A DNA stretch of 15,999 bases from Octopus sinensis (taxonomy: Eukaryota), in assembly GCF_006345805.1 (NCBI RefSeq), contig NW_021825330.1:1-15999 (forward strand), written 5' to 3'. The notes below the pieces were generated by a model. That model had not been told where the DNA came from. It did no database searches and worked only from the letters and a program-made list of their open reading frames with translations. Positions within the stretch are counted from its first letter, which is position 1, and every line of letters starts with the position of its first letter. This document shows, piece after piece, positions 1 to 15,139 of the stretch. Made by a program: the position numbers and the translations under genes.

Positions 1-688
1 CTTGCAATCATTACGCTAGAAGAATAAACCTCGCATCGAACTATTTATATCCGCTTTTCACAGCGGATTTCGGGAAGAAGATCGACTTCTGACATCGTGT
101 GGACCCCATAAATGGCATTGTTCCGCCATTCAAAAGTTCAAAAATGCGACATACATTCTTGGCATCGATATGTCAATGAATCCCTTGATAATCTTCTATC
201 CGATGATCAGGGCACTCTTATCAGAAACCTATCTATCGGTCAGGTACGAGACAAGTGCTCTAAACCATTTGAAACAACATCTGGAACATCTCAAGGGGAT
301 CCGTTATCTCCTATACTGTTTGTCATATATTTGGAAGCTGGCATTGAGAGAACTAAAACCATACTATGAAGGAAACGGATCAATGTGGTGGCTACGCGGA
401 TGACGTGGATTTTATTCTTCCGAAGGTGATGCCAATAGACTTGCTGAGTTGTTCCTCAATGTAAATTTGGAGAAAACAGAATTTACTGAACTAGCAAGAC
501 AGAAATCTAAGCTGGACGAACATTGGAAAAAGTAAAGAAACTCGGATCTCTATTGGAAGACGAAGATTGCGAAAAACACATGCAAACAGTGCACTACGCA
601 GCTTAAAGGAAAATTGGCTAAAACGCAAAGGATTCAGCACAAAAACCGGATAAGACTATACAATTCACTAGTGAAGCCAATACTTCTA
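1..688 (+). mobile_element. Non-LTR retrotransposon (RTE-like LINE) reverse transcriptase, 5' part, frameshifted; cut at 688 by the Tc1-bounded unit
   Basis: RT motifs across frames: HSGFR / RSTSDIVW (~60-105), LGIDMS (~160), GTSQGDPLSPILFVIYLE (ORF 112-369), YADD at 393-404 (tac gcg gat gac), LNVNLEKTEF, KKLGSLL, RIRLYNSLVKPILL ending at 688. Confidence 0.92.
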
Positions 689-870
689 CCTCCATGTAAT
701 AAAAAATCGGATTTTCAAGCATGTTTTTACTAGTATTTTTAAATGTATATCAATTTTTAAATTCTTTTCTGCAGTCGTTTGTTGTATTTTTTACTATTTT
801 TAAATTATAATGTATATTTGAATAACTGATCTTGATAAAATCTTAGCGTGTATTAAAAAACCGGATTTTT
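689..870 (+). repeat. Left IR/DR arm of Tc1 element 1 (outer and inner transposase-binding repeats)
   Basis: Outer CATGTAATAAAAAATCGGATTTT (~694-716) and inner CGTGTATTAAAAAACCGGATTTT (847-869), about 150 bp apart. Confidence 0.8.
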
Positions 871-959
871 TTTGATTAGTCTGTTGCTAAGCCAATTTTA
901 GGTATTGAAAAAATTGCTTGATAAAATCAATAAAGGAAAATTCTAGCTCTCATTCAATT

Positions 960-1900
960 AAATTGGACACCAAAGAAGATTGTTGAGGAGCTGATATCTA
1001 ACTTCGACTCTCAATGATTTTCTGAATAAGTTAAATAAAAAAAGGGACTGTTGATCGTATACCTGGTTCTGGAAGACCCAAAAGCTCTCTAACTTAGATA
1101 TTTGTAAACTTGTCAACATTGTGAAAAAAAATCCAAAAAAAACACTTGCCAACCTGAAAGAAGTCTTCGATTTTACAGGAAAGTTGTCTGCAAAAAAACA
1201 ATAAGCAATTATCTACATGAAATTCATTACAAAGCATGTGTGGTGTAAAGAAACTTTTTTTATCAAAAAAAATAGTGAACAATACGAGCTTTCAATAATC
1301 TTTTCTGCCATAAGCAATGAAACGTGGAGAACTGTTATATAGAGTGACAAGGCTTCCTTTGAAATTTTTTTCATCTAAAAAAAGAAAATTTTGCTTTAGA
1401 AACAAAATAGCCCTAAATTATCCCCATTTAACGCCAACTTTGAAGTTTGGTGGTGGAACAATTATGGTATGGGTTGTATCTCCTATCATGGAAAGGGGAA
1501 TTTGGTTATAGTAAATGAAAAAATAAATTCTTCTGCTGTATATATCAACATTTTAATAAATAATTTGTGGAAATCGGCAGATAAAATGGGGCTAAATCGT
1601 TTTTATTTTCAACAAGATTTGGCCTCCTGTCATAATTCACGGAGAACAAACAATTTTTGGATGAGAAAAAATTGAATTATTAAATTGGGCACCACATCAC
1701 CAGATTTGAACCCAATTGAACATTTGTGGAGCTACATAAAGGAAGAATTGAGTAAAAAAATGCTGCACAGTAAAAGGATTTATGCGAAAATATCATAAAA
1801 ATTTGGGACTAAATACCAATGGAATTTGTGAGAAAATTAACTGAAAGCATGCCAAGAAGAAGCATTGAGCTTTATAAGGCCACATGAGGACACATTAATA
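960..1900 (+). pseudogene. Tc1-family DDE transposase remnant (element 1), frameshifted
   Basis: PGSGRPK (~1062-1082), SDKASFEIF (first D, ~1343), TLKFGGGTIMVW, GCISYHGKGNL, FQQDLASCH (second D), SPDLNPIEHLW (E, ~1697-1730), ESMPRR. Confidence 0.9.
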
Positions 1901-1922
1901 TTAATCATTTTGACTTTTTTCT

Positions 1923-1940
1923 AATCCGGTTTTTTTACAC
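1923..1940 (-). repeat. Right inner DR of Tc1 element 1, with no outer DR after it locally
   Basis: AATCCGGTTTTTTTACAC is the reverse complement of the left inner repeat. The matching outer end appears only at ~9092-9124. Confidence 0.75.
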
Positions 1941-1962
1941 AGAAAAATTTAATTAAAATTAA

Positions 1963-2291
1963 ATCATCGAATTGATCGGCCCAATCATGCTGCATATTAT
2001 CAACGCAAAAACAAAGAGATCGCAGGGGAAAGTTCACAAATTCTCGAAAGGATTTCCCCCCTTGAAAGCCACCTAATTTCAGAATGATAAAGTAGTAATA
2101 GAATGATCACTTCCTAACTCTTCACAAAGAGTTGGAAAATTCGATGATTAAGTGTCGAGATCGAATATAGTTTATCACTTTTACAATAGTGTTTAGTGTT
2201 TTCTCTTAACGACGAACCATAGTTTTTGAACAAAGTGCATATTTGTGCCATGCACAATGTCTTGTAACAATATCAGGAACCAAATCCTTAA
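1963..2291 (-). pseudogene. Buster/ZBED-type hAT transposase 1, downstream part, truncated at ~1963
   Basis: Minus strand reads (R)IKDLVPDIVTRHCAWHKYALCSKTM (CxxH), LYHSEIRWLSRGEILSRICEL (RW motif) and HDWADQFDD, then stops with no hAT terminus. Confidence 0.85.
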
Positions 2292-2293
2292 TA

Positions 2294-3368
2294 CAGTGCT
2301 GGTAGAAAAAAACCGGTTTTGCAGTTACTAACTTTTTTTGGCAGATAGCATTTATTTTTTTTTACTGAATCGAACTCTTTGTAGTTGATTAGATTTATAT
2401 TTTTTTTATTTATAAAAAATTTCATTATCGTTTACAATTCGGATAATTTAAATTGTAGCGTGTGAATAAAAAACCGGTTCTCTTCGGAAGAGTATGTCAA
2501 CGCAAACCGTTGCTTTCGAAGAAAACATAATAAAAAGATGTGAATTGTCAAAAATTTTTATTCTGATGAACAATGATGCATGGAGGACTATTATTTTCTT
2601 TGATGATACATCTTTTCAGATTTTTCCTACTAAAAAAAGGCAATACTGTTATCAAAAAAAAGTTCATGTTATGAATTGAGTCATATAACGCCGACAGTAA
2701 AATTTGGTGGAGGTAGCGTTATAGTTTGGGGCTGTATTTCCTATCAAGGAGTGGGCGATTTAGTTTTTGTTAATGGAACACTCAATTCCGCTAAATATAT
2801 AAATGCAATAACGAATAATTTGTTTGTTTCGACGCGAAAAATGGGACTAAATCAGTTCACTTTCCAACAAGATTTGGCTCCCTGCCATCATCTGCATTGA
2901 CAACCAAGTTTTTAAGAAATAAATTCCAATTCTTGATTGGGCTCCGCAATCTCCAGACATGAACCCAATGGAACATGTTTGGAGCATGATGAAGCAGAAG
3001 TATTCTTTAGATCCTGCAAAAAATAAACTGGATCTGGAAGTCAAATTAACAAAAATTTGGAACGAATTGCCGTCTGAAAGTATTCAGAGTTAATGATAGC
3101 ATGCCTAAAAGGTCATAAGAGCTATTTATAATCGAGATACCACACAACATATTAACTGTTGATTTTGTTAACTCTTTTTGTTTAAAACCGGTTTTTTATT
3201 CACATGCAAAAATTTAAATTTTTAAAATTTCGGCCGATTTTGAAATTTTTTAAAAGAAAAAAGATTAATATATAATCAACTTCAAACTCTTTATTTCATT
3301 TAAAATTAATAGCTATCCGCCAAAAAAAGTTAGTAACTGCAAAACCGGTTTTTTTTCTACCAGCACTG
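2294..3368 (+). mobile_element. Tc1 element 2, internally deleted, 1,075 bp, inserted into hAT 1
   Basis: 56/57-bp TIRs CAGTGCTGGTAGAAAAAAACCGGTTTTGCAGTTACTAAC... (2294-2349, 3312-3368). TA at 2292-2293 and 3369-3370. Inner DRs near 2459-2478 and 3186-3207. Motifs IIFFDDTSF, TVKFGGGSVIVWGCISY, FQQDLAPCH, WAPQSPDMNPMEHVW. The hAT text on both sides joins as ...VTR|IKDLVP. Confidence 0.95.
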
Positions 3369-3370
3369 TA

Positions 3371-4147
3371 CGAGTAACAGTCCAGATTGATGACCAATCA
3401 TCGCAGGTGCACCATCATACATATAGATCCACTTTAATCCCATTGGATTTTATTCGTCTTCATAAATTGTCAAAATATTAAAGATGTCCTCTCCACGAGT
3501 GTGTCCATCCATCTCCAAACAAAATAAAAACTCATCAATAATATTCTCATCATCAACAAAGCGAACATAGGACACCAGCTGACAGACGTTAGAATGTCAG
3601 TTGACTCGTCCAATTGAATACTTATTCTTCATTTACTTTTATTGATTCTTTCAATTAATTGCTTCAGGATATTAGATGACAATTCTGAAATTCTACGGGA
3701 AATTGAATCGTTGGATAATGGTATGTCCTTTAAGTTTGGTAACTGCATCCGGACCAACAAAATCGAGCCATTTCAAGAGCCGCTGTTTTATTAACTTTTC
3801 ACCAGAATTATGTACAGCTTTGTTTTTTTTGCGATAATCATTGAGACCTATTTGTTTTTGATATAAATTAAAATTACAGCATATGATGCTTCTAATCTCG
3901 GTTTATCTGAGATTTATTAAACCACTCAAGCTTTGGCTGTGAATCAAACTTCGTTCTTTTGACTTTAAATATTCATGTGAGGAAGAATTTTTCTCTGGGT
4001 GTACAGACTCTTTGTGGCGCCTAAGTTGAGAAGGTTTTCAGTGAATTGTTTTCCCAAAATTCTATGGCAAATCATGCATTTTGCCTTTATTTCATTATTT
4101 GAGGCAATGAATTTAGTGAATCCAAACGTTGTTAGAATATTTTTCAT
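3371..4147 (-). pseudogene. Buster/ZBED-type hAT transposase 1, upstream part
   Basis: FGFT...KAKCMICHRIL (BED-like, ORF 3965-4147), LEASYA|VSMIIAKK, DIPLSNDSISRRISEL, SIQLDESTD, QLVSYVRFVD, FLFCLEM, DGAPAMIGHQSG. Confidence 0.88.
3848..3877 (-). other. 30-nt GT-AG intron in hAT transposase 1
   Basis: GTAATTTTAATTTATATCAAAAACAAATAG ends in an in-frame TAG. Removing it gives ASYA|VSMIIAKK, matching VSYAVSELVAK in the hAT at 11539-13716. Confidence 0.75.
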
Positions 4148-4427
4148 TTATTAAATATATAGATTATTGTTAATTTTAATAACGAATCTTATTAAATAGT
4201 ATAGATTTATTGTTAATTTTAAAAAATCGATAAAAAATTCATTAAATTTTATTATTTGATATCAATTTTTATTTATTTTTTTTGTAAGAAAGAAATTAAA
4301 GATAGCTAAGTCAATTTTCTTTGTTTTTCGATCTAATTTGTTTCAGACATTTCTTCCTAGTGAAAGCATTTTGAAAACATCTACGATTTGTAAAGAGGAA
4401 TATACTAACCCGGAAAGCATTTCATTA

Positions 4428-4523
4428 TGCTCATAATCCTCCTGTGTAATAAGTACAGCCAAATTGACAAAATGCACGTTCGTTGTGTTGGAAAGCATCA
4501 ATTGACTTGAAAAATGATTTCAG
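4428..4523 (-). repeat. 96-bp inverted copy of SKI3-like coding sequence 7372-7470
   Basis: Reverse complement CTGAAATCATTTTTCAAGTCAATTGATGCTTTCCAACACAACGAACGTGCATTTTGTCAATTTGGCTGTACTTATTACACAGGAGGATTATGAGCA aligns with 7372-7470 apart from a few indels and substitutions. Confidence 0.93.
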
Positions 4524-4545
4524 TAAGGAGGAATAATAAACAATA

Positions 4546-5930
4546 CAGTCCGACCCCCAAATGGGGCACCAAGTGCCCCAAATGCGGGGGTGCCCCAAAA
4601 CAGGGGTTTGTTATTTTTTTAAAAATTAAACCATTAATAAACATCAAAAAACATTTTTATTACTAAAATATTCAGTTATTTTCTTATTTGTAGAGTTTTG
4701 TCTGATATTGTTTCGTCAATTTCAGCCGAAAATCAAAAAAATCTCGGAGCATACTTGGTGCAACATTAGAAATTTTTTTCTTCTAAATTGTTAAGCGTCT
4801 TTTGTTTGTTTTTTTTGTTTTTGCTACGACATTTTCACTATTTTTCGGTTTCTGAATATGTATCATAAACATTATTGTTCATTCTTCGCATTCTCCATCA
4901 ATTGTTTTCGTTAACAACTTGATCTAAATGTTCATCTGTTAGACATTTTTTGTTGCATAAGAATCACGGTTCCTGTCGATTTTCTTCCACCAATTAACAA
5001 TACTTTTAGCATCTATTTTCTCCCATCCTTTTGAAATTAGCATCATAACCTGACGCAAATTTATTTACCAATAGAATGTGTAAAATCGTTTTCGAAATCT
5101 TGAAACATAAAATTCCATTAAGAAAGAGGAATAATAATCTTTAAAATCTTGATTATTCCCATATCCAAAGTTTGTAAATAGGGCGTTGTATTTTTCGGCA
5201 AAATAAAAATTCGATGTTCGAACATTCGGCAGTTTATGGCATCCCGCATTGTCAAGTATTAATAATATTTTTCTGTTGTTTTTGCAAAACGATTCATTTA
5301 TAATGTAAGCCACTCATAAAAGCTTTCCAGTCATCCATGCATTTTGAGAAGATGAATACAATAACCCAAAATCTTGAACATCAAAATTTTTTAGACACCG
5401 AGGTTTTTTATATTTTCCAATAATCATGGAAGGCCTGAAATCGGAATTTTATCTACGCGTAGTCTTTGAAATATTTCAAAGACTTGATCATCAATTTATC
5501 TTTATCGGCTTTAAATGTGTCATATTCCTCAGAAATAGTATTGCCGTGTTGCAAGAAAGGTACAATATTTCGTTTTTATTCTTGATATTGTTCCTTTACT
5601 TGTGTTGTACTTTTTTCATTAGTTTTGCCTCTCAGATAAATTTTTCTTCAAAATTTCTTTAGCAATCTTCATTTAGTTTCGTAATCCATACCACAACAAT
5701 AAAAATATAAATTGAAAATAAAACAAAAATAATTAATTTATTATAATTTTATTTTATTTTTAATTCCTATAAATGATTTTATGGTGCCCCAAAAATTCCA
5801 TAATTTTTTATCGATTTTTATTTTTTTTCTGCCAAAATGTACTTTGGAATAAAGTGCCCCAAATTGCGGGGTGCCCCAAAATCCGAGGGTGCCCCACCCC
5901 TGGGGTCTGCCCCATTTTGGGGTCGGACTG
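4546..5930 (-). mobile_element. pogo/Tigger-family DNA transposon, 1,385 bp, degenerate DDE_1 transposase
   Basis: TIRs CAGTCCGACCCC(C/A)AAATGGGGCA. TA at 4544-4545 and 5931-5932. Minus-strand motifs IIGKYKKPRCLKNF, YSSSQNAWMTGKL, RKILLILDNAGCH. GTGCCCCAAA subterminal repeats. Confidence 0.93.
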
Positions 5931-6243
5931 TAGCCCCTAATTATTTTGCATCAAAGTAATGCAATTCAGGGCTTCTCTCTAGGTTTTCAGGTTGTCTGCT
6001 ATTATTAGAAACTCTCTCAATGTAATTTCGGAAAAGCAGATTCTTAAAATTTTTACAAAATTGTCAGATTTGTTAAACAAGTAGTTTTTATGCCAAAATT
6101 TATTTTTATTAATCAAAATATTGGAAAATCTATTTAATTATTTTTTTAACATATTTATGGTTATATTTTCATAACATATTATCCTAAATAAAATAAAATA
6201 AATACGAAAGAGCTGGCTACAAACCTGGATTCTGAAACATTGA

Positions 6244-8696
6244 TTTAAAAATGCCGAAATGTACACAACCCGTGCCTACTCACACTGCTACAACACAACT
6301 GAAGGACTCTATTCTGCTTTTTTTCCTGTTTTTTTAGAAGCAGTCAAATTAGTTCCAAAGAAGCTCAATTTTCTTAAAATTTGAGATTTTTTCCAATATT
6401 TCATGAACGATTCAACCGTGCTTATTCTTGCTATGAAAGAGCCTACACTCGATTCCTTAGTACCAGAAATTGCCATTGCCTACCACGGAAGTAGCTTCGG
6501 TCTACTAAACAAAGATTCAAGTCAAAAATACCTTCAAAATTTCATTCGAAGTGATCTTTCTCCAGCAATGATCCCCGCACACTCCGCAGACTGGCAATAT
6601 TTTACATGTGCATGGATGAATACTCCAATCTCTGCGGATTTGTGACCTAGCAATTGACATTGACAAAGATTGTTTTCATTTTTGTAATGTTGAGGAACAG
6701 AACTGATTCGACTCAGTGGAATGAGTCTGACTTTTAACCACAAATCTTTTCTCGAAAAGTCTCAAGACATGCCCCAATGGAGGCTTTTAGTTAAACTGAT
6801 TATTACAATCTCTTCCCTCAAAAGCGGGACTTTGAAGAGATCGCCTCAACCCTCGAAGAATTGCTGAATTCAACCAACGAAGAATCGGAAGATTTGACGA
6901 TTTTTAAAGTCCTTTATGCTGAAGTTATGTGCTATTTTGGAGACGATTTGTTATCAAAAATCGTTTTTGGAAGCTTTTACATTTATACAATTGCTTTCGA
7001 AGTCTCTCCGTTTGTTTTTTATCCCAGGAAAGCAGAGATCAGAAAATAGTTCTGTTTTTATTTGGTTATTCTGCCTTTCGTCTTTCCAGCTATGTTTCCA
7101 CCCCGATTCTCCTCCTGGCCATGAAACTCTTCAGACATACGTCAAGTTGAGTATTTGGGCCTTTGGTCATTTGGCCATTATGACCAGGCTGTGTTCTGCG
7201 TTTTTATAACTGTGCTTTGGCTGCCTCATTTCTTTGGAGAATTAATGGAAATGAGAGTGCCCGTGATTTGTCCGTGGGGTGTGCAGTCTCCTCTGTTTGT
7301 GAGAGTGGTGGGAGTTCTGATCGTGGCTTCTTTTGGGGACTGTTGCTTACTTTTCAAGGATTACGTTCTCGCTGAAAAATCATTTTTCAAGTCATTGATG
7401 CTTCTCAACACAACGAACGTGCATTTGTCAATTTGGCTGTACTTTATTACACATGTGAGGATTATGAGCACTCCTTTCGTGTCATTGAAATGTCCAAGAA
7501 TGTTTCATTTTCTCGGGATAGTGAAATTATGTTAAAATTCTTCTAATGAAAGCGGGCACTTCAGATCATTGGGAATTTTTGATGGAATTGACAAGCATTG
7601 ATGGTAGCTATTAATGGCTTCAATCCATCAATTTTACCTATCGATTTTTTGCTGTGCACGTGCGACAAATTTGTGTTCGATATCCTGTTTTCAGAATGGA
7701 AAAAAAAATATTCCGTCTTGTATATCACTAAGGATTTATCTCCAGAGGATCAAGTCACCAAGGCCATTGAAGGTCTTTTTTATTATTTGGAGGCTCGACC
7801 CAACGATGCAATGGCTCAGTCTCTACTTGGGTCGTTCATGAATTTATTGGATTTCAAAACATCAGATGATCGGCATAAAATGGCTTTACAGCTCATCTCA
7901 GAAAAAAACGACGTATTTTCTCTCCGCCCCGAACAACTATCCAGCCTTGATTGTGAGGTTATATTTAACGCAATGAGAAGCCTTGTCGATTTGAGAATGA
8001 CTGGAGAATATATTTCTTCTTTGGTCTCATATCCGGGCACTAATCAATGCGAATTATTAAACGGATTTATTGGCTTGTACAACATTGGGGAGTACACTTC
8101 TGCACTGAATATATTAAATTTACTTCACCGTGATCCTTTCAGTTTTCGACTGCATGGAATTACTATTTTTAAATGTGGGAGACCAAATGATGCCCTTGAC
8201 TATTTGCTGAAGGTCAAATGTCCAGAATTAGTTTATGATATTTTCTATTTGTCCTTTCCTACTGAAAAATCAAGACTCTGCATATCAGGCATTCAAAATC
8301 ATTTTTGCCAAAAAGTCTTGAAGCTCTGTTTGTGAAGAGTTTATGGAAGTTCATGTCAGGAGACAGGTCCCCCATTTGTAATCTGGGTAATATACAACTT
8401 CGTTCTTTTTATAAAATGGGGAAGAATGATTTTATTCAGTATTATCTGGCACTATTATTATCCAATGAAGTGAGAATTGCAGACCTACCCATTTTTCGAC
8501 GTATGGTTGGTCAGTGTGAAAATCCACCGATGTGCTAGCCTCCACAGCTCTTGCAAGCTTTTCAGAAACATTATTACTTGTCTCCGCCTTAGTTCTTATT
8601 TTTATCGTTACTGAAATTTTTCTTTGTTTTATTATATATGGCTTCTTTTTTAATAAAGGCGTATTTATTACGATAATAAATACGCAATACAATTAG
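6244..8696 (+). CDS. SKI3: TPR-repeat protein resembling the central part of SKI3/TTC37 (SKI complex subunit); about 18-20 apparent 1-2 nt deletions; start and end approximate
   Basis: Frame-corrected segments match TTC37 motifs as I recall them, in order: FNRAYSCYERAY (KNRARGCYRKAF); LRRLAIFY (LRRGLYY); WLLLGTVAYFFKDYVLAEKSFFKSI (WNALGVVA...NYALAQHCFIKSI); NERAFVNLAVLYY (NAVAWTNLGVLYL); YYLEARPNDAMAQSLLG (KYVERIQNYAPAFTMLG); MTGEYISS (STGEYDKA). Longest clean ORF is 7598-8335 (245 aa). Orthology not verified by search. Confidence 0.65.
8659..8685. other. Perfect 12-bp hairpin with 3-nt loop
   Basis: GCGTATTTATTA-CGA-TAATAAATACGC. Confidence 0.9.
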
Positions 8697-8700
8697 CTAA

Positions 8701-8985
8701 TTAATTGTAATTTACTATAAGTTAATAAAGTCATCCATCCGAAGTGGACCCCGCCAACATAATTGACGTTGCGTTGCCTCTCACGATAGCAACGGAGATC
8801 AACTGGAGAAGCCACCGGGTCTCACTTGTGTCGTGGCTTTTTAATGTGACTAAGCGTCCAAGGTTCTTTAGGAAGTGAAGCGATTTCCCACTTATTCCTC
8901 CAGTTGTCTCGACCACAATCGGAACACGAATCGGTCTCGCAGCGCTTCATATTTTCTCTTCTTTGGCCTCAGCTAAACTTTAGCT
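8701..8985 (-). mobile_element. 5'-truncated CRE-clade-like non-LTR retrotransposon 3' end (C-terminus of the restriction-like endonuclease domain plus AT-rich tail)
   Basis: AEAK..KRKYEALRDRFVF.PIVVETTGGISGKSLHFLKNLGRL...WLLQLISVAIVRGNATSIM fits the K..KY...F.P..VET.G......FL..LG......QRISIAIQRGNA..I pattern of CRE-like elements. Confidence 0.7.
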
Positions 8986-9124
8986 GTGCAAAAAGATTAT
9001 TGAAAAATTATAAAAAGAAAAGTTACGAAGATTATCATTATAAATTAAAAAAAAGTCTAAAATTAAAAACAGAATATCAAAAAAATTAAGCATTCGAAAA
9101 TCCGGTTTTTTATTACATGGAGTG
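8986..9124 (+). repeat. Outer part of the right arm of Tc1 element 1
   Basis: Ends CATTCGAAAATCCGGTTTTTTATTACATGGAGTG|TA, inverse of 689-716. AT-rich spacer; no inner DR in this segment. Confidence 0.8.
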
Positions 9125-9126
9125 TA

Positions 9127-9604
9127 TATAATGCCGGAAATTGGGAACTTTCCGCTACAGACAATGACAACCTAGACTCTTTCCATAGAGATCATCTCCG
9201 ACGTACACTACCCTCAAAGTGGCATTCAAGGCTGAGTAGCAGAACAGTTTATCCCAGAACATCAAGCAAACCAATCTCGCTCGAAATTACCCAATGCAGA
9301 TGGAGGCTGTTTGGACACATTCTAATGATGGATTTGGATGCACCGGAAACGCCGCTAAGGAGGACTATTTCGAAGCTGGGGGCCATCGTTTTCGTGGGCG
9401 ACCAAGAAATACTCTCCTGGGTACGCTGGATAGAGACCTAAAGAGGGCTGGTAAAGAATTGAAGAACGGGGACGATCTCGATGCACTACGGGACGTCGCC
9501 CAAGATCGCGGGAAATGGAATAAACTAATTACTCGTATTGTTTCCTGTGCTGCACAAGCTTTGTCATGATCCATGGCATCGCGAAAGTGCCTATAATGAT
9601 AATG
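9127..9604 (+). mobile_element. 3' continuation of the LINE from 1-688
   Basis: YNAGNWELSATDNDNLDSFHRDHLRR, RWRLFGHIL, FRGRPRNTLLGTLDRDL, LRDVAQDRGKW, stop at 9567-9569, short TAATGATAATG tail at 9594-9604. Confidence 0.9.
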
Positions 9605-9929
9605 TGCTCTTTATTTTAATAAAATGTGTTTGCTGCCTATTCGAGGCTCTCGTTATAAGGCTAATAATAATGGAAGCGTTTCATGACTTTTTGGCCCGAC
9701 TGTATGCAGATAAGAGAATAGTCAAAGCCCTAAAAGTCAACTCAACGGTAACACCCATCAATCCTAACAGACTCGTTTGGCAGGATACCGGTGCTCGGAT
9801 CGGTAGCAGATAACGCTTTCCAACAATTCTCAGACGTATCTAAGCAATTCCACTCAAATGAAGTTAATTGCAATTTTAATTCTTACTAGTCCATTTAACA
9901 CTAATTAGAGATAAGAAAAGGAGAAAGGA

Positions 9930-10071: not shown

Positions 10072-11538
10072 TTATCAAGTTAGTTAATTATTGACATCCT
10101 AGTATTAAATTAAGTACAATCTTTTCTGCATAAAAAATTGTTTGATGCCTGATACCGGAATAGGTTGCAATTTATTGTTAGTAAACTAACTCACCATATT
10201 TCTCTTCTATTACTAGTAATACCTCGTGAGATGGACTTGCATTTATTCTCACAAGTTTGTCAGTTAATAAGACACCCGTCGAATCTTTCTTTATCATCAT
10301 TTTAGTAATCCTTATATGAGAATATTTTAAGTATATATTGTGGGTTGAGACGCGTTATTAAATATGCACATTTTATTAAATCCATAAATACTACACAGTG
10401 AATATTTTAAAATACGAAATTTCTAGAATACGACTGATTTTGGGGGACTGAAAATGGAATTTTTTGGCATGTAACTTTAATGTTAAAATAAGATTTTTAC
10501 AGAGATTTTAAACTTTGTAGACTTGCCAAGGCATCTACATGCAGGAAACGAAGGGCACTACACGCATACAGATCTCATTATAATTAAAAATCATATTTTA
10601 TTGTGAATAACTCATTGGTTAGTATCGAACTTTATTTGTTAATATATATTACTTTACACTTAATTTTCAGTGATGATGAAAATAGGCAGTTGACTGGTTC
10701 ATTTGGAGACTTGCTGATTATCCTAATGCTAAGATTGCGGGTTTGAGGACACAAACCTATAGTCAAACGTTGAATTATCGGCTTGATTCTTGAATCCTGG
10801 TTCCATATTTAAAAATCCAAAAATACAGATTCGGAGTCACTAGTTACTATTTGATAATTTGAAATAAATATTTAAGTTATAGTTTTGTAAATATGTCAAC
10901 ATTCATGTACTTATTTCAAAAGTTGCATACCCTAATACAACGGAGAATTGATTTGAGATACCAAAAGTTTATTTGGGACATTAATTATTGTGACCGGTCG
11001 AAAATGAGATACGGTTGAATACGAGCCGTTAAAAAAATCGATAGTCAATATACCGATAAAAAAAAGCCAATTAACAAAATGGCACACGGCGCGTACTAAT
11101 GATTGAACCTTTAATCTTTTAAAAAATGAAGTTTTATATCTAAACCAAGTTTGCTTTAAATTAGTCAAATTATTCACAACATTAGCAAATTATAATTTAC
11201 ATCATTTTAATTTTTGATAATATACATTTCATTGATAGGCGGAAAGTATGTATAAAAAGGAGAAGGAAAGAGGCCACGCAGCCCCCAATGAGAGACGCTG
11301 AAACAGCCATTGGGTCTTGCGAGTGTCCTTCATGTACACAGATCAGCGATCCGAGCCATCTGACAAAAGAATTGATTGAATTTTGATTAAACAGAAAAAA
11401 ATTGCTGAACAACTTTTCTTGATCATATTCGGAAATAATTTAAGAAGATCTTGTTCCTGTTATCACTTAAATAATCTTATTTAAATTAATTTGTGAAGAA
11501 AGCTTAGTACATAAACTAGTGTAAAGTTTGCTTTAAAC

Positions 11539-13716
11539 CAGTGTTTCTCAACCTTTTTTTCCCTGAGGCCCATTTTCAGGGTCATATAAAATCTCAGGCC
11601 CATTGCCTTTAATAAAACTTTGATTAACAAAAAAGTATTTTTATTAACATAAAAAATCTTATTAAAATGTCAATGACTACACTGCTCTTGATGTCTATCT
11701 ATCAATTTGTCAAGTTGAATTTCCAGATCTTGGTTCAACCTCAAACGTAAGTCTCCTCTCTTCTCAATCTGCAATTGATTGCGTTTTTTTGTGAGTAAAT
11801 CGTTTGTTGCAGAAAATCCTGTCTCAACCAACCAAGTGGTGGGAAAGCCAAGTACAAACGGAACAACTTTTTCAAAGAGTAATGGATGAATCGATTCTAC
11901 TTTCATCCATCCATATAAGCCATCCCTTTCAATATTTTTCATTAATACTTTGTTCTCCTTCAGTTCAAGAAGTTCTCCAGCAATAATAGGATCAATGTCT
12001 TTTTCACTTAATACGTCAAAATGTGCTATATCTATAATCCAACTAGGCGGATTCATTTCGATGATATCTTTAAATCTTCTAGTCATATCTTCTTTCAAGC
12101 ATTTCAAGTGGTCAGTGCAGCTTGCGATTACTTCTGAGCTCGGAGCAGTTTTGGCAAAATTACAAAAATAAGCAAATTCATTTTTTTGAAGATGCATCTT
12201 CCAGAGACATAACTTGTTCAAAAAAGAGCGTACTTTCTCAGCACTATCTATCAGATTAGCATTTCGCCCTTGCAGTGTCATGTTCAGTTGGTTGACATGT
12301 GCGAATAAGTCAGCCAGGTAAAAAATCCTTGCTTTTGTATCGTTGTTATTTATCACTGAAAACAAAGTCTCAGCTTTATCTTTCTGCTTCTTGCTACAAG
12401 CTTGTTTTTCATGTCATGAACAAAAATAAGAACCATATCCCACATTTCAGCAAGACGAACTAGGGAATTTCCTTTGGAAAGCCATCTCACTTCAGTGTGC
12501 ATGAGGAGTCTCTGGTGGTCCTCATGTTCACATAAATGTTGAAATAGGCGGTCATGCAAAGCATTGGCTTTGACAAAATTCACTGTTGAAACAGCGACTT
12601 TCAATGCATGTTCCATGTCATCATTGAGAGATTTAGCACAAAGATGTTCTCGATGGATGATGCAATGAATTGCCAATATATGAGGGGCAACTTTTTTTAA
12701 TTTAGCTACAAAGCCATTCTGTTTGCCGGTCATAGCGCTGGCACCGTCTGTTGCAATCTGCAACAGATTTGACAGAGGGATCCCATTATCGTACAGATAG
12801 TCGTAAACAGCCGCATATATAGTGTCGCTTCGTGTGTCAATCAACTTTTTTATAATAACATTTCTTCATGAATTGCCATTGCATCAATATATCGGACATA
12901 AGTAAGTAATAAGGCAGAATTGTTGATTGTTGTCTCATCAATTTGTAGTGAGAACTTAGAAACTTTTAATTTTTCCACAAGCTGTTTCTCGAGGTTTTCT
13001 GCCATTTCAATTTGCCTTCTCTTCACTGTGTCATTAGACAATGGGATTTTTTGTAGAATGTTGGCAGCCTGTTCTCCTAGCAGTTCTTTAGCACAGATCA
13101 ACATTGCTGGCTTCACCAGACGTTCTGCAATTGTATGTGGCTTCCCCACCTTAGCAACCAGTTCACTCACTGCATAACTGACTTTTAGTGTCTTGTTATT
13201 ATGCTCATTTGCTTTTTTTAAGCAGAATTCTAAAGTTTTTGGAGCATTCTTTTGGCGTAACTCCACTTTCTTCCTGAAATAGCTGCGCTCCTTTCCAACA
13301 GAAGCAGGATGCTTCAACTGTTGATGGGCGAACAATTTTGATTTCTTCATGGAAACATTTGTCATTACTAAGCCACAGTCCACACATTCAGGCCTCTTAG
13401 AATCAGCACTTGATGGGATGAAGCCTAGTAATAAAAAATCAGTCTGGTATTTGCGTGTAGTCTTCCTTTTTTCCTTGTGTACTTTTGACATGAACTATAC
13501 AATCAGGCCTATAATATTTAAATTTAAATATGACAATATCATTAAATTAAAAACAAATCAAATCAATTTGAAAATAATAACGAATAAAGATTTATTAGTA
13601 TTAGTATTAACATATTTTCTTTGAGGCCCACTCCAGGCCCAATTAAATCTTCAGGCCCATTTCAAAATTTCTCAGGCCCACAAGTGGGCCTGGGGCCCAA
13701 CGTTGAGAAACACCTG
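11539..13716 (-). mobile_element. Buster-type hAT transposon 2, 2,178 bp, nested in the Ginger element
   Basis: TIRs CAG(G)TGTTTCTCAAC. 8-bp TSD CTTTAAAC (11531-11538, 13717-13724) with central TA. AGGCCCA subterminal repeats near both ends. Confidence 0.96.
11670..13491 (-). CDS. hAT (Buster/ZBED5-like) transposase, ~607 aa after two single-base corrections
   Basis: Three consecutive ORFs (213, 163, 231 aa) with CVDC...HQQLKH, QIDETT, TDGASAM, HCIIH, EVRWLS and LVETGFS. Adding one T near 12855 (EEMLFIKKL) and one A near 12391 (VAKKQKDK) joins them. Confidence 0.9.
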
Positions 13717-13916
13717 CTTTAAACTAGTCAATTATTCCCTACAAATCATTTTTATTTTTGAAAAGATAAATTTTATTGAATTAAATTTCGATTAAGCTAT
13801 TCTACCTCGCTAAGTCCTCTCTGCTATTTTTCTGAATCACAGTACCATCTTCTGCTTCGGATCAACATTCCTGTGCAGATACTCCTCTAACATAATATGT
13901 GAATGTATCAATGTGC

Positions 13917-14889
13917 TCATTTAGGCACTTTCCGTGTTTTTTTATTATTGTCAAGATACACCCTCCTGACAACTCGATCGCCGATGTTAAAAATGGAAAT
14001 ATCATTCTTCCAGGTTCTTTTTCCTAACATTTTTCTTTCGGCATGGTCTGAATTCGAAATTGCTTTCGTTCTCGTGGTTTCATTCGATGACAAAAACCAT
14101 GCAAGATATTCAGTTGCTTCACTTTGTGTTTCTTTATTCCCCGAATCAATTTGGTGGAATATTTCATTCATTTCGTTTTCTGAGTAGTGATTATTAACGG
14201 TGTCATCGGCAGAATCGAACTTTTTTTCGTTTACGAATTCCTTGCCATTGTCTGTGTGCAAAATGGTTGGTTTTCCAAACATCAGAATTATACTTTTTAT
14301 TGCACTTGACACCTCCATGGCCGATTTAGTCTTTAGAGGTCTTGTCCAACAAAATTTAGAAAAAGAATCCAACCCAACCAAAAGCCAGCAAAAATTGTCA
14401 TTGGCATTTGAATAATGCCGTAGATCAACTAAATCAAAAATATATCTGATATTAGAGTAGATAACTACTACCTTTCTCTGACTATATATGCTCTGATAGG
14501 TGTTATACTTGGTCGAGTGTTCATAAGTCGTCTTGCAAGACATTGTGGACAAGACCTGAGAACAAGCATAACTTCATCTCTGCAAGATCCATAGACTAAT
14601 TCTTTAAAAGAGAAAGAAGTCTATCACGACCAGGATGTCCATTTTTGAGGTGAACATTTTTAATAAATATCCTCTGCTGTTCATCCTCTTCCACAGCGAA
14701 CACATGCAAAAGAATTCCACTTGTTTTGAAAAAAAATAATTGATCCGGCGAGGAGTCTATTAATCTGAATAAGGATGTAGTTCTTATAAAATTTCGCTTC
14801 TCCTTTAGCAAATTGGATGGTATAATTTGATATTTCAGATAGGTTATAATTCCTGGCTTTTGTAGCAGACTGAAACGGACAACCTTCAT
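13917..14889 (-). CDS. Ginger-type integrase/transposase (HHCC plus partial rve core), with an intron and an internal deletion
   Basis: HLKNGHPGRDR...SCPQC (HHCC), RERYIFDLVD after splicing (first D), GLDSFSKFCWTRPL, ILHTDNGKEF (second D). The G...QG.VER.N segment carrying the catalytic E is absent after ~14222. Confidence 0.85.
14446..14471 (-). other. 26-nt GT-AG intron in the Ginger integrase
   Basis: GTAGTAGTTATCTACTCTAATATCAG, with a CTAAT branch-like motif. Removal joins frames: ...PIRAYIVRE(AG|A)YIFDLVDLRHY. Confidence 0.8.
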
Positions 14890-15060
14890 AAAAAAAAAAC
14901 TAACGTGAGGAAAAATCTATTACTATTCTATCTGACGTAAACCGTTAAGAAAACAAAAATTTTGAAAAATTTAGAATTATTAAAATTACAAATCATTATA
15001 AAGGTATAAATTAATTTTGATTAATTTTTTCATTAAAAAAATATTGACGATTTTTTTAAC

Positions 15061-15135
15061 GGCTCGTATTCAACCTGGGCTCGTATTCAACCGGTCACAA
15101 TTGTGACCTGGGCTCGTATTCAACCGGTCACAATT
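15061..15135. repeat. Repeat cluster and palindrome at the Ginger right terminus
   Basis: GGCTCGTATTCAACC three times; 27-bp direct repeat at 15076-15102 and 15109-15135; palindrome GGTCACAATTGTGACC at 15093-15108. Confidence 0.9.
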
Positions 15136-15139
15136 ATTA

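Follow-up and report, generated by a model that had tools for sequence, protein, structure and literature searches.

How does a complete host gene come to lie between the two ends of a Tc1 transposon? The question is raised by contig C1801 of Octopus sinensis (assembly of 2.72 Gb in 13,516 contigs), whose entire 15,999 bp form the window analyzed here, and in which matching Tc1 ends inside a long interspersed nuclear element (LINE) enclose a gene copy. A sequence-only reading of this contig had offered two answers, namely a Pack-type or composite Tc1 that moved the gene-bearing block, or a block copied into one Tc1 arm after insertion. We read the structure from assembly contigs and sequence comparison, in which its components and their boundaries, the target duplications, the empty sites, the intact source loci, and the uniqueness of the junctions can be seen directly. 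Protein domains were scanned with Pfam, using family copies where open reading frame (ORF) fragments of the window mostly gave no match. The structure consists of nested insertions (Tc1 in the LINE, hAT in Tc1, and two later elements) and one break-repair capture of a whole gene region. Probably, a hAT element entered the right arm of a Tc1 that already lay in the LINE, and a break at the far end of the hAT was then filled by an ectopic 4.85-kb copy.

A Tc1 element with a split right arm

The host LINE is read on the plus strand, with its reverse-transcriptase region to the left (1–688; weak RVT_1 match, ORF 112–369) and its 3' part to the right (9125–9620). The Tc1 between them, also on the plus strand, is in two parts. 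The left part (689–1953) holds direct repeats at 696–714 and 850–868, a decayed transposase at about 900–1890, and the inner direct repeat of the right arm at 1923–1940; the distal right arm (8979–9124) begins with TTTAGCT (8979–8985), holds the outer direct repeat (9097–9117), and terminates in ...CATGGAGTG. The inverted ends (690–716 and 9096–9122) match over 27 nt at 96% and are bordered by a TA target-site duplication at 687–688 and 9125–9126. At least 40 further copies of this family are present in the genome. Intact members are about 1.45 kb long, end in ...CATGGAGTG followed by TA, and carry two direct repeats per arm, an inverted repeat–direct repeat (IR-DR) layout; terminal inverted repeats with two transposase-site direct repeats in each arm are likewise present in the outer Tc1 of the window. 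The ORF of a family copy matches HTH_Tnp_Tc3_2 (47.2 bits against a cut-off of 31.5; 2.7e-12), while the decayed transposase fragments of the window gave no Pfam match.

The insertion site in the LINE can be reconstructed from other copies of both elements. The filled site reads CTTCTA...TATATAATGCC and the empty site CTTCTATATAATGCC; when the flanks are joined (GTGAAGCCAATACTTCTA/TATAATGCCGGAAATTGG) they read in frame as VKPILL/YNAGNW, and 400 bp of joined flank match at least 25 uninterrupted LINE family copies at 86–92%. The literal empty site, CTTCTATATAATGCCGG, occurs in a second, longer LINE copy on contig C268. A search for an empty allele of the exact LINE copy (at least 96% identity) found none, and matched only other members of the LINE family. 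The right arm is divided into 1921–1953 and 8979–9124, with ...CTAATCCGGTTTTTTTACACAGAAAAATTTAAT ending at 1953 and TTTAGCTGTGCAAAAAG resuming at 8979. Compared with intact family arms only 8 bp, ATAGTCAG, are gone, and at least 14 other Tc1 family copies have the two arm pieces contiguous. The sequence-only reading had reported matching Tc1 ends at 689 and 9124 with TA on both sides, LINE flanks that rejoin in frame (PILL/YNAGNW), and a split right arm, and all three observations hold when set against the family copies; the empty LINE site that it proposed looking for also exists, in the other LINE copy.

A second copy of the structure

Contig C268 gives the best match in the genome to the Tc1 body and carries the same Tc1 at the same position of the LINE fragment. 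It is collinear with the window from 138 to 9145 apart from three large indels. One is a stretch of 925 bp that C268 has and the window has not. In the other two, C268 lacks window 2294–3368 and 4546–5930 and has a single TA at each place, so that both are empty sites there. Over 3.2 kb the two contigs show 85 gap positions and 36 mismatches, most differences thus being indels. They have 551 bp of left-hand and 21 bp of right-hand LINE flank in common, and further out the flanks differ on both sides. We considered C268 as a simple allele of the window and rejected this, as the flanks diverge beyond window 138 and 9145; the two copies may be segmental duplicates, products of LINE–LINE conversion, or parts of a rearranged haplotype. 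On its outer left (reverse-complement 1–156) C268 has 156 bp of unrelated sequence, and on its outer right, from 21 bp past the Tc1 end (reverse-complement 7656–19060), 11 kb with degenerate TTAGGG-like repeats, retroelement pieces, and a run of coiled-coil ORFs. The far part of these 11 kb is the longer copy of the same LINE that carries the empty Tc1 site.

A hAT remnant between the direct repeats of the arm

Directly inside the interrupted arm lies a hAT element on the minus strand, in two fragments. The first (1954–2293) is from the C-terminal side of the transposase, and the second (3371–4126) continues it and includes the BED zinc-finger region. A 2.35-kb family with many genomic copies has the 15-bp sequence CAGCGGTTCTCAACC as its terminal repeat, and in four independent copies this exact repeat stands at both ends and is accompanied by perfect 8-bp target duplications (ATGTAGAA, GGCTATAC, GTATAGCC, and ATTTAGAA). 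These terminal repeats and 8-bp duplications mark the family as hAT. The transposase domains themselves gave weak matches (zf-BED, E = 8e-4, below cut-off; DUF4371, E = 0.073), and the motifs EIRWLSRG and FPTTYHCEMAMS...RNRL were recognized by eye only. The homology ends at window 4126 in more than 35 family copies, and full copies run about 350 bp beyond this point to the second terminal repeat, ...GGTTGAGAACCGCTG. For the family copy on C10756, an end about 215 bp past the breakpoint was at first entertained and then rejected, because a pattern search placed the true repeat about 350 bp away, after a terminal tandem duplication. In that copy (2330–2609) about 130 bp of subterminal sequence is duplicated in tandem, and a degenerate internal version of the terminal repeat precedes the true one.

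The manner in which the hAT reached the arm is legible in C268. GTTTAGCT is present a single time in intact Tc1 arms. The C268 arm runs ...ATATAGTCAGTTTAGCT and then CAGCGGTTCTCAACC, with GTTTAGCT directly to the left of the hAT repeat (...GTTTAGCT/CAGCGGTTCTCAACC) and TTTAGCT directly to the right of the whole foreign block; GTTTAGCT and TTTAGCT agree at 7 of 8 bases as a target duplication. With the terminal repeat retained in C268, this arrangement shows that a complete 2.35-kb hAT was inserted in the arm, with the inner direct repeat on one side of it and the outer one on the other. Of the two terminal repeats C268 keeps the left one only, and the window keeps neither; the inner element is therefore a hAT remnant and not an intact member of the family. 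Of the 925 bp deleted from the window copy, 15 bp belonged to the Tc1 arm and 910 bp to the start of the hAT with its terminal repeat; the joint has 1–2 nt of homology, and it is because of this deletion that the block had seemed to start inside a truncated hAT. The earlier statement that about 7 kb of DNA has no termini of its own is accordingly true of the window copy and false for C268, where the hAT terminal repeat and target duplication survive.

The captured segment and its source locus

Once a later pogo-like insert is set aside, window 4176–8971 is a copy, at 95% identity, of a locus that occurs in five places, on C10135 (two copies), C8901, C12218, and C9495. The captured segment measures 4.85 kb and comprises upstream DNA (4176–4545, plus strand), the promoter side with a whole copy of a TPR gene (5931–8698, plus strand; gene at about 6223–8586), and the tail of a putative RLE-type non-LTR (long terminal repeat) retroelement (8699–8971, minus strand; 273 bp), which the earlier reading had called a CRE. 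The gene copy, traced by tblastn frames, shows several frame changes and matches the five source copies at 95%. In the source loci the gene has an intact intronless frame of 807 codons, with a predicted protein of 793 amino acids. A word-based search found no homologue of the TPR protein, and at the Pfam cut-off it gave only TPR-repeat matches. The retroelement that follows the gene in the source loci runs past 8971, the point at which the window copy is cut; its ORF (L031) has readable C-x-C...H...C (CCHC) and RPD...D...K motifs and no Pfam match. Since the source gene frame is intact and the retroelement continues past the breakpoint, the window holds a truncated copy of the locus and not the original. 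No Tc1 or hAT sequence lies beside any of the five source copies. A genome search for the block with and without Tc1 ends, as the sequence-only reading had proposed, thus comes out as copies without them.

The gene that precedes the TPR gene in the source loci is intronless and TBC1D19-like. In one source locus its ORF matches the NCBI protein 'TBC1 domain family member 19-like [Octopus sinensis]' at 100% identity; identity with the TBC1D19 of O. bimaculoides and of other animals is only about 35%. On C10135:1–10000 the two intronless ORFs stand side by side (1443–2720 and about 3800–6200), as they also do on C8901, C12218, and C9495. C10135 carries the source unit twice, 32,453 bp apart and with 0 differences in 2.4 kb, owing either to a tandem duplication of very recent date or to duplication in the assembly. 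Upstream of the captured gene, window 4428–4520 is a 95-bp inverted copy of a gene piece (7377–7470, codons about 388–420). The same inverted piece is present in the sources on C8901 and C9495, and is therefore older than the capture; it is deleted in C10135 and C12218.

Repair-like junctions on both sides

Both junctions of the captured segment look like repair scars in their sequence. On the hAT side, hAT sequence (...GAATCCAAA) ends at 4126 and gives way to a patchwork (4127–4175). This opens with about 20 bp of source (CGTTGTTAGAATATTTTT), whose source match AAACGTTGTTAAGAATATTTTT shares AAA with the hAT, and continues with a duplicate of about 32 bp of source from just downstream, after which the source proper begins with about 110 bp skipped. 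All 35 candidate loci were scored across this patchwork, and the five source copies match from 4176 onward only. On the arm side, the retroelement (...CCCTCA) is followed by the 7-nt filler GCTAAAC (8972–8978) and then by the arm (TTTAGCTGT...). The filler is the reverse complement of the adjoining arm and target-duplication bases, the arm's own first bases, so that a palindrome AGCTAAA-C-TTTAGCT is formed at 8971–8985; it is absent from the retroelement and from intact arms. Genome searches found each junction (4126/4127 and 8971–8979) in C1801 and C268 only.

The hairpin-like palindrome near 8971 had raised the possibility of a Helitron, which was rejected because the palindrome is made of arm sequence. 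The Helitron signature (5'-TC...CTRR-3' ends, a 3' hairpin, insertion between A and T, no target duplication) is not seen at the locus, whose left end is a hAT repeat with a target duplication.

Divergence of the two copies

In 2.4 kb of the gene, 18 sites set the window and C268 together apart from all five sources, a pattern that points to a single capture, after which the two copies split. Between these two copies about 2% of aligned bases in the same 2.4 kb are different, a figure inflated by misaligned indels. Private indel columns in this stretch (window 6300–8700) number 34 in the window and 23 in C268, and 0 in the five source copies, which lie on contigs of 37–509 kb. The small contigs of the assembly therefore look poorly polished, and frameshifts in them are not taken at face value. 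Frame breaks in the captured TPR gene are largely not common to the window and C268, and part of the apparent decay of the gene may be consensus error in small contigs; we make no claim as to whether the copy is dead or alive.

Two further elements entered the window copy. A Tc1-like IR-DR element (2294–3368, plus strand) has inverted repeats with ends CAGTGCTGG...CCAGCACTG and TA at 2292–2293 and 3369–3370, and a pogo-like element (4546–5930, minus strand) has 25-nt inverted ends (CAGTCCGACC...), TA at 4544–4545 and 5931–5932, and a weak DDE_1 match. Both are absent from C268, the pogo-like one from the source loci as well, and the single TA in C268 at both places identifies them as later insertions. 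Near both ends of the pogo-like insert (4571–4600 and 5852–5899) there are repeated GTGCCCCAAA(A/T)... motifs, which may be candidate subterminal transposase-binding repeats.

Proposed history and its alternatives

The history that we favor would begin with insertion of a 1.45-kb IR-DR Tc1 at a TA inside the LINE. A 2.35-kb hAT would then have entered the right arm, landing between its two direct repeats and duplicating the 8 bp GTTTAGCT. The order of these steps, Tc1 into LINE, then hAT, then capture, is the one we infer. The DNA would next have broken at the far end of the hAT, most likely through a cut by hAT transposase that left a hairpin on the flanking DNA, and about 350 bp of the hAT would have been lost. 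It is known that hAT transposases form hairpins on flanking DNA, whose opening and joining leave footprints (PMC5499845). The broken end may then have invaded the unlinked TPR locus, made a few short abortive template jumps, and gone on to copy about 4.8 kb processively, taking in intergenic DNA, the whole of the intronless TPR gene, and 273 bp from the start of the neighboring retroelement. Joining of the new end to the arm would have occurred via a 7-nt inverted repeat, derived from snap-back synthesis or from the hairpin. The 6.9-kb product, together with about 570 bp of LINE flank, is now found in two contigs. After the copies separated, the window copy gained the Tc1-like and pogo-like insertions and lost the 925 bp across the arm/hAT boundary. 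Synthesis-dependent repair of excision breaks can import foreign 'filler' DNA (PMC4423477), Ds (hAT) elements with filler DNA, occasionally genic, have been described (PMC3260210), and when transposon breaks are repaired in the germ line, nearby sequence serves as the template for inserts, in some cases by snap-back (PMC4490562, PMC4912351). The locus has the features by which such filler DNA is recognized, namely an intact source elsewhere, a captured piece with neither ends nor duplication of its own, and microhomology and templated patches at the junctions. Of the two answers first offered, copying of the block into the arm after insertion is thus the one supported, in the more specific form of a hAT insertion with an 8-bp duplication followed by an ectopic 4.85-kb copy from a source without Tc1 ends.

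Several observations weigh against this history. The two contigs on which it is built are short (16 and 21 kb) and indel-rich, and the outer flanks of the two copies differ. A source allele that already bore the 4127–4175 patchwork is a residual possibility, though none is among the 35 scored candidates. The center of the arm-side palindrome is C, while a simple hairpin on GTTTAGCT predicts G. The 7-nt inverted insert fits snap-back synthesis as well as it fits a hairpin, and so does not prove a role for the transposase.

The most serious competitor is end joining of a loose 4.85-kb DNA fragment into the break, with no repair synthesis. In its favor, both ends lie at non-homologous positions with 1–3 nt of microhomology. 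However, at the hAT-side junction two short pieces templated from the source stand in the wrong order, with about 110 bp passed over and 32 bp repeated, a pattern that repeated template switching explains better than a single ligation, and the source copies are intact. We consider ligation unlikely, and the fill-in was probably replicative, by synthesis-dependent repair. Aberrant hAT transposition can make composite insertions, as with maize Ac/Ds, so that a hAT beside the TPR gene might have carried its flank into the Tc1 arm. This hAT is near none of the five source loci, however, its junction with the source lies inside the element, 350 bp from the end, and the near-complete 8-bp duplication shows that a normal two-ended insertion came first; such transduction is very improbable here.

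The composite or Pack-type Tc1, in which the hAT and the gene were assembled inside a Tc1 elsewhere and a unit of about 6.9 kb then jumped into the LINE, would if true be a natural Tc1 carrying a complete host gene. It draws on the intact outer ends and TA duplication, the clean LINE site, and the fact that the order of events cannot be read from two copies at one site. Yet the unit is known from a single LINE site: junction searches of the genome returned no second TA site, where the sequence-only reading had proposed looking for one, and did not show the cargo-bearing unit recurring at an independent TA site amid unrelated flanks. The internal junctions occur in C1801 and C268 only, and the second copy shares the 551 bp and 21 bp of LINE flank, which makes it a DNA-level duplicate, a conversion, or a rearranged haplotype and not a product of transposition. 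Moreover, the inner right direct repeat is 5.5–7 kb from the outer one, whereas the best-studied IR-DR element requires all four repeats and loses efficiency with increasing size (PMC7827188), and no other copy of this Tc1 family has cargo in that arm. Composite transposition is therefore unsupported, and we hold it to be highly unlikely. An equally slight chance attaches to an assembly artefact, in which chimeric joins arose in a poorly polished small contig. The window is indeed a whole 16-kb contig with 34 private indel columns per 2.4 kb against none in the contigs of the source copies, but both key junctions recur base for base in C268, a contig set apart from the window by private substitutions, by three large indels, and by different flanks. 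The pattern of target duplication and empty sites also makes biological sense.

Another insertion in the window

Beyond the LINE, the window contains an insert of 4.1 kb (10982–15139) with inverted repeats of about 55 nt at its ends and a 30-bp tandem repeat at 15073–15135. It holds the remains of a hAT-like transposase (11670–13494, minus strand) and an integrase-core ORF (13917–14573; rve, 1.9e-10). The matching stretch of C268 is without this insert.

Comparison with known systems

The structure is a new example of known processes whose scars are unusually readable, and it opens no new question. It demonstrates that a look-alike of a giant gene-carrying Tc1 can arise by ordinary steps, one telltale feature, the hAT terminal repeat, having been erased by the 925-bp deletion. 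It is also a clean natural case, from a cephalopod, in which a multi-kilobase copy of an unlinked locus patched a break at the end of a transposon and both scars can still be read. The copy took in a whole gene with its upstream DNA, which is one route to gene duplication at the DNA level.

The closest parallel is the filler DNA of maize Ds-like elements ('abortive gap repair'), in which the interior of a hAT has likewise given way to an unrelated genomic copy whose source locus can be identified, and the junctions show short homologies (PMC3260210, PMC4423477). The octopus case differs in that one terminal repeat was lost, so that the product cannot move as a hAT, in that 4.85 kb with a complete gene and upstream DNA was captured instead of a fragment, and in its host, which is not a plant. 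Nested transposon insertion accounts for Tc1 in the LINE, hAT in Tc1, the Tc1-like element in the hAT, and the pogo-like element in the captured DNA, each with a target duplication and an empty site; nesting alone leaves 4127–8978 unexplained, as this segment has neither ends nor a duplication of its own. The junctions resemble the products of polymerase-theta-type end joining, which leaves short inserts from break-adjacent sequence, inverted ones among them, with minimal homology (PMC4490562, PMC4912351). Polymerase-theta scars usually consist of a small deletion and an insert that ranges from a few bases to tens of bases, whereas here a multi-kilobase ectopic copy lies between the scars, and a strand-invasion step would therefore also be needed. 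Finally, as in Pack-MULEs, Helitrons, and CACTA elements, host gene sequence lies between transposon ends. Those elements are mobile and occur in several copies with the ends of the element, whereas the octopus structure occupies a single site, between the ends of an ordinary Tc1 that was disrupted in its arm.

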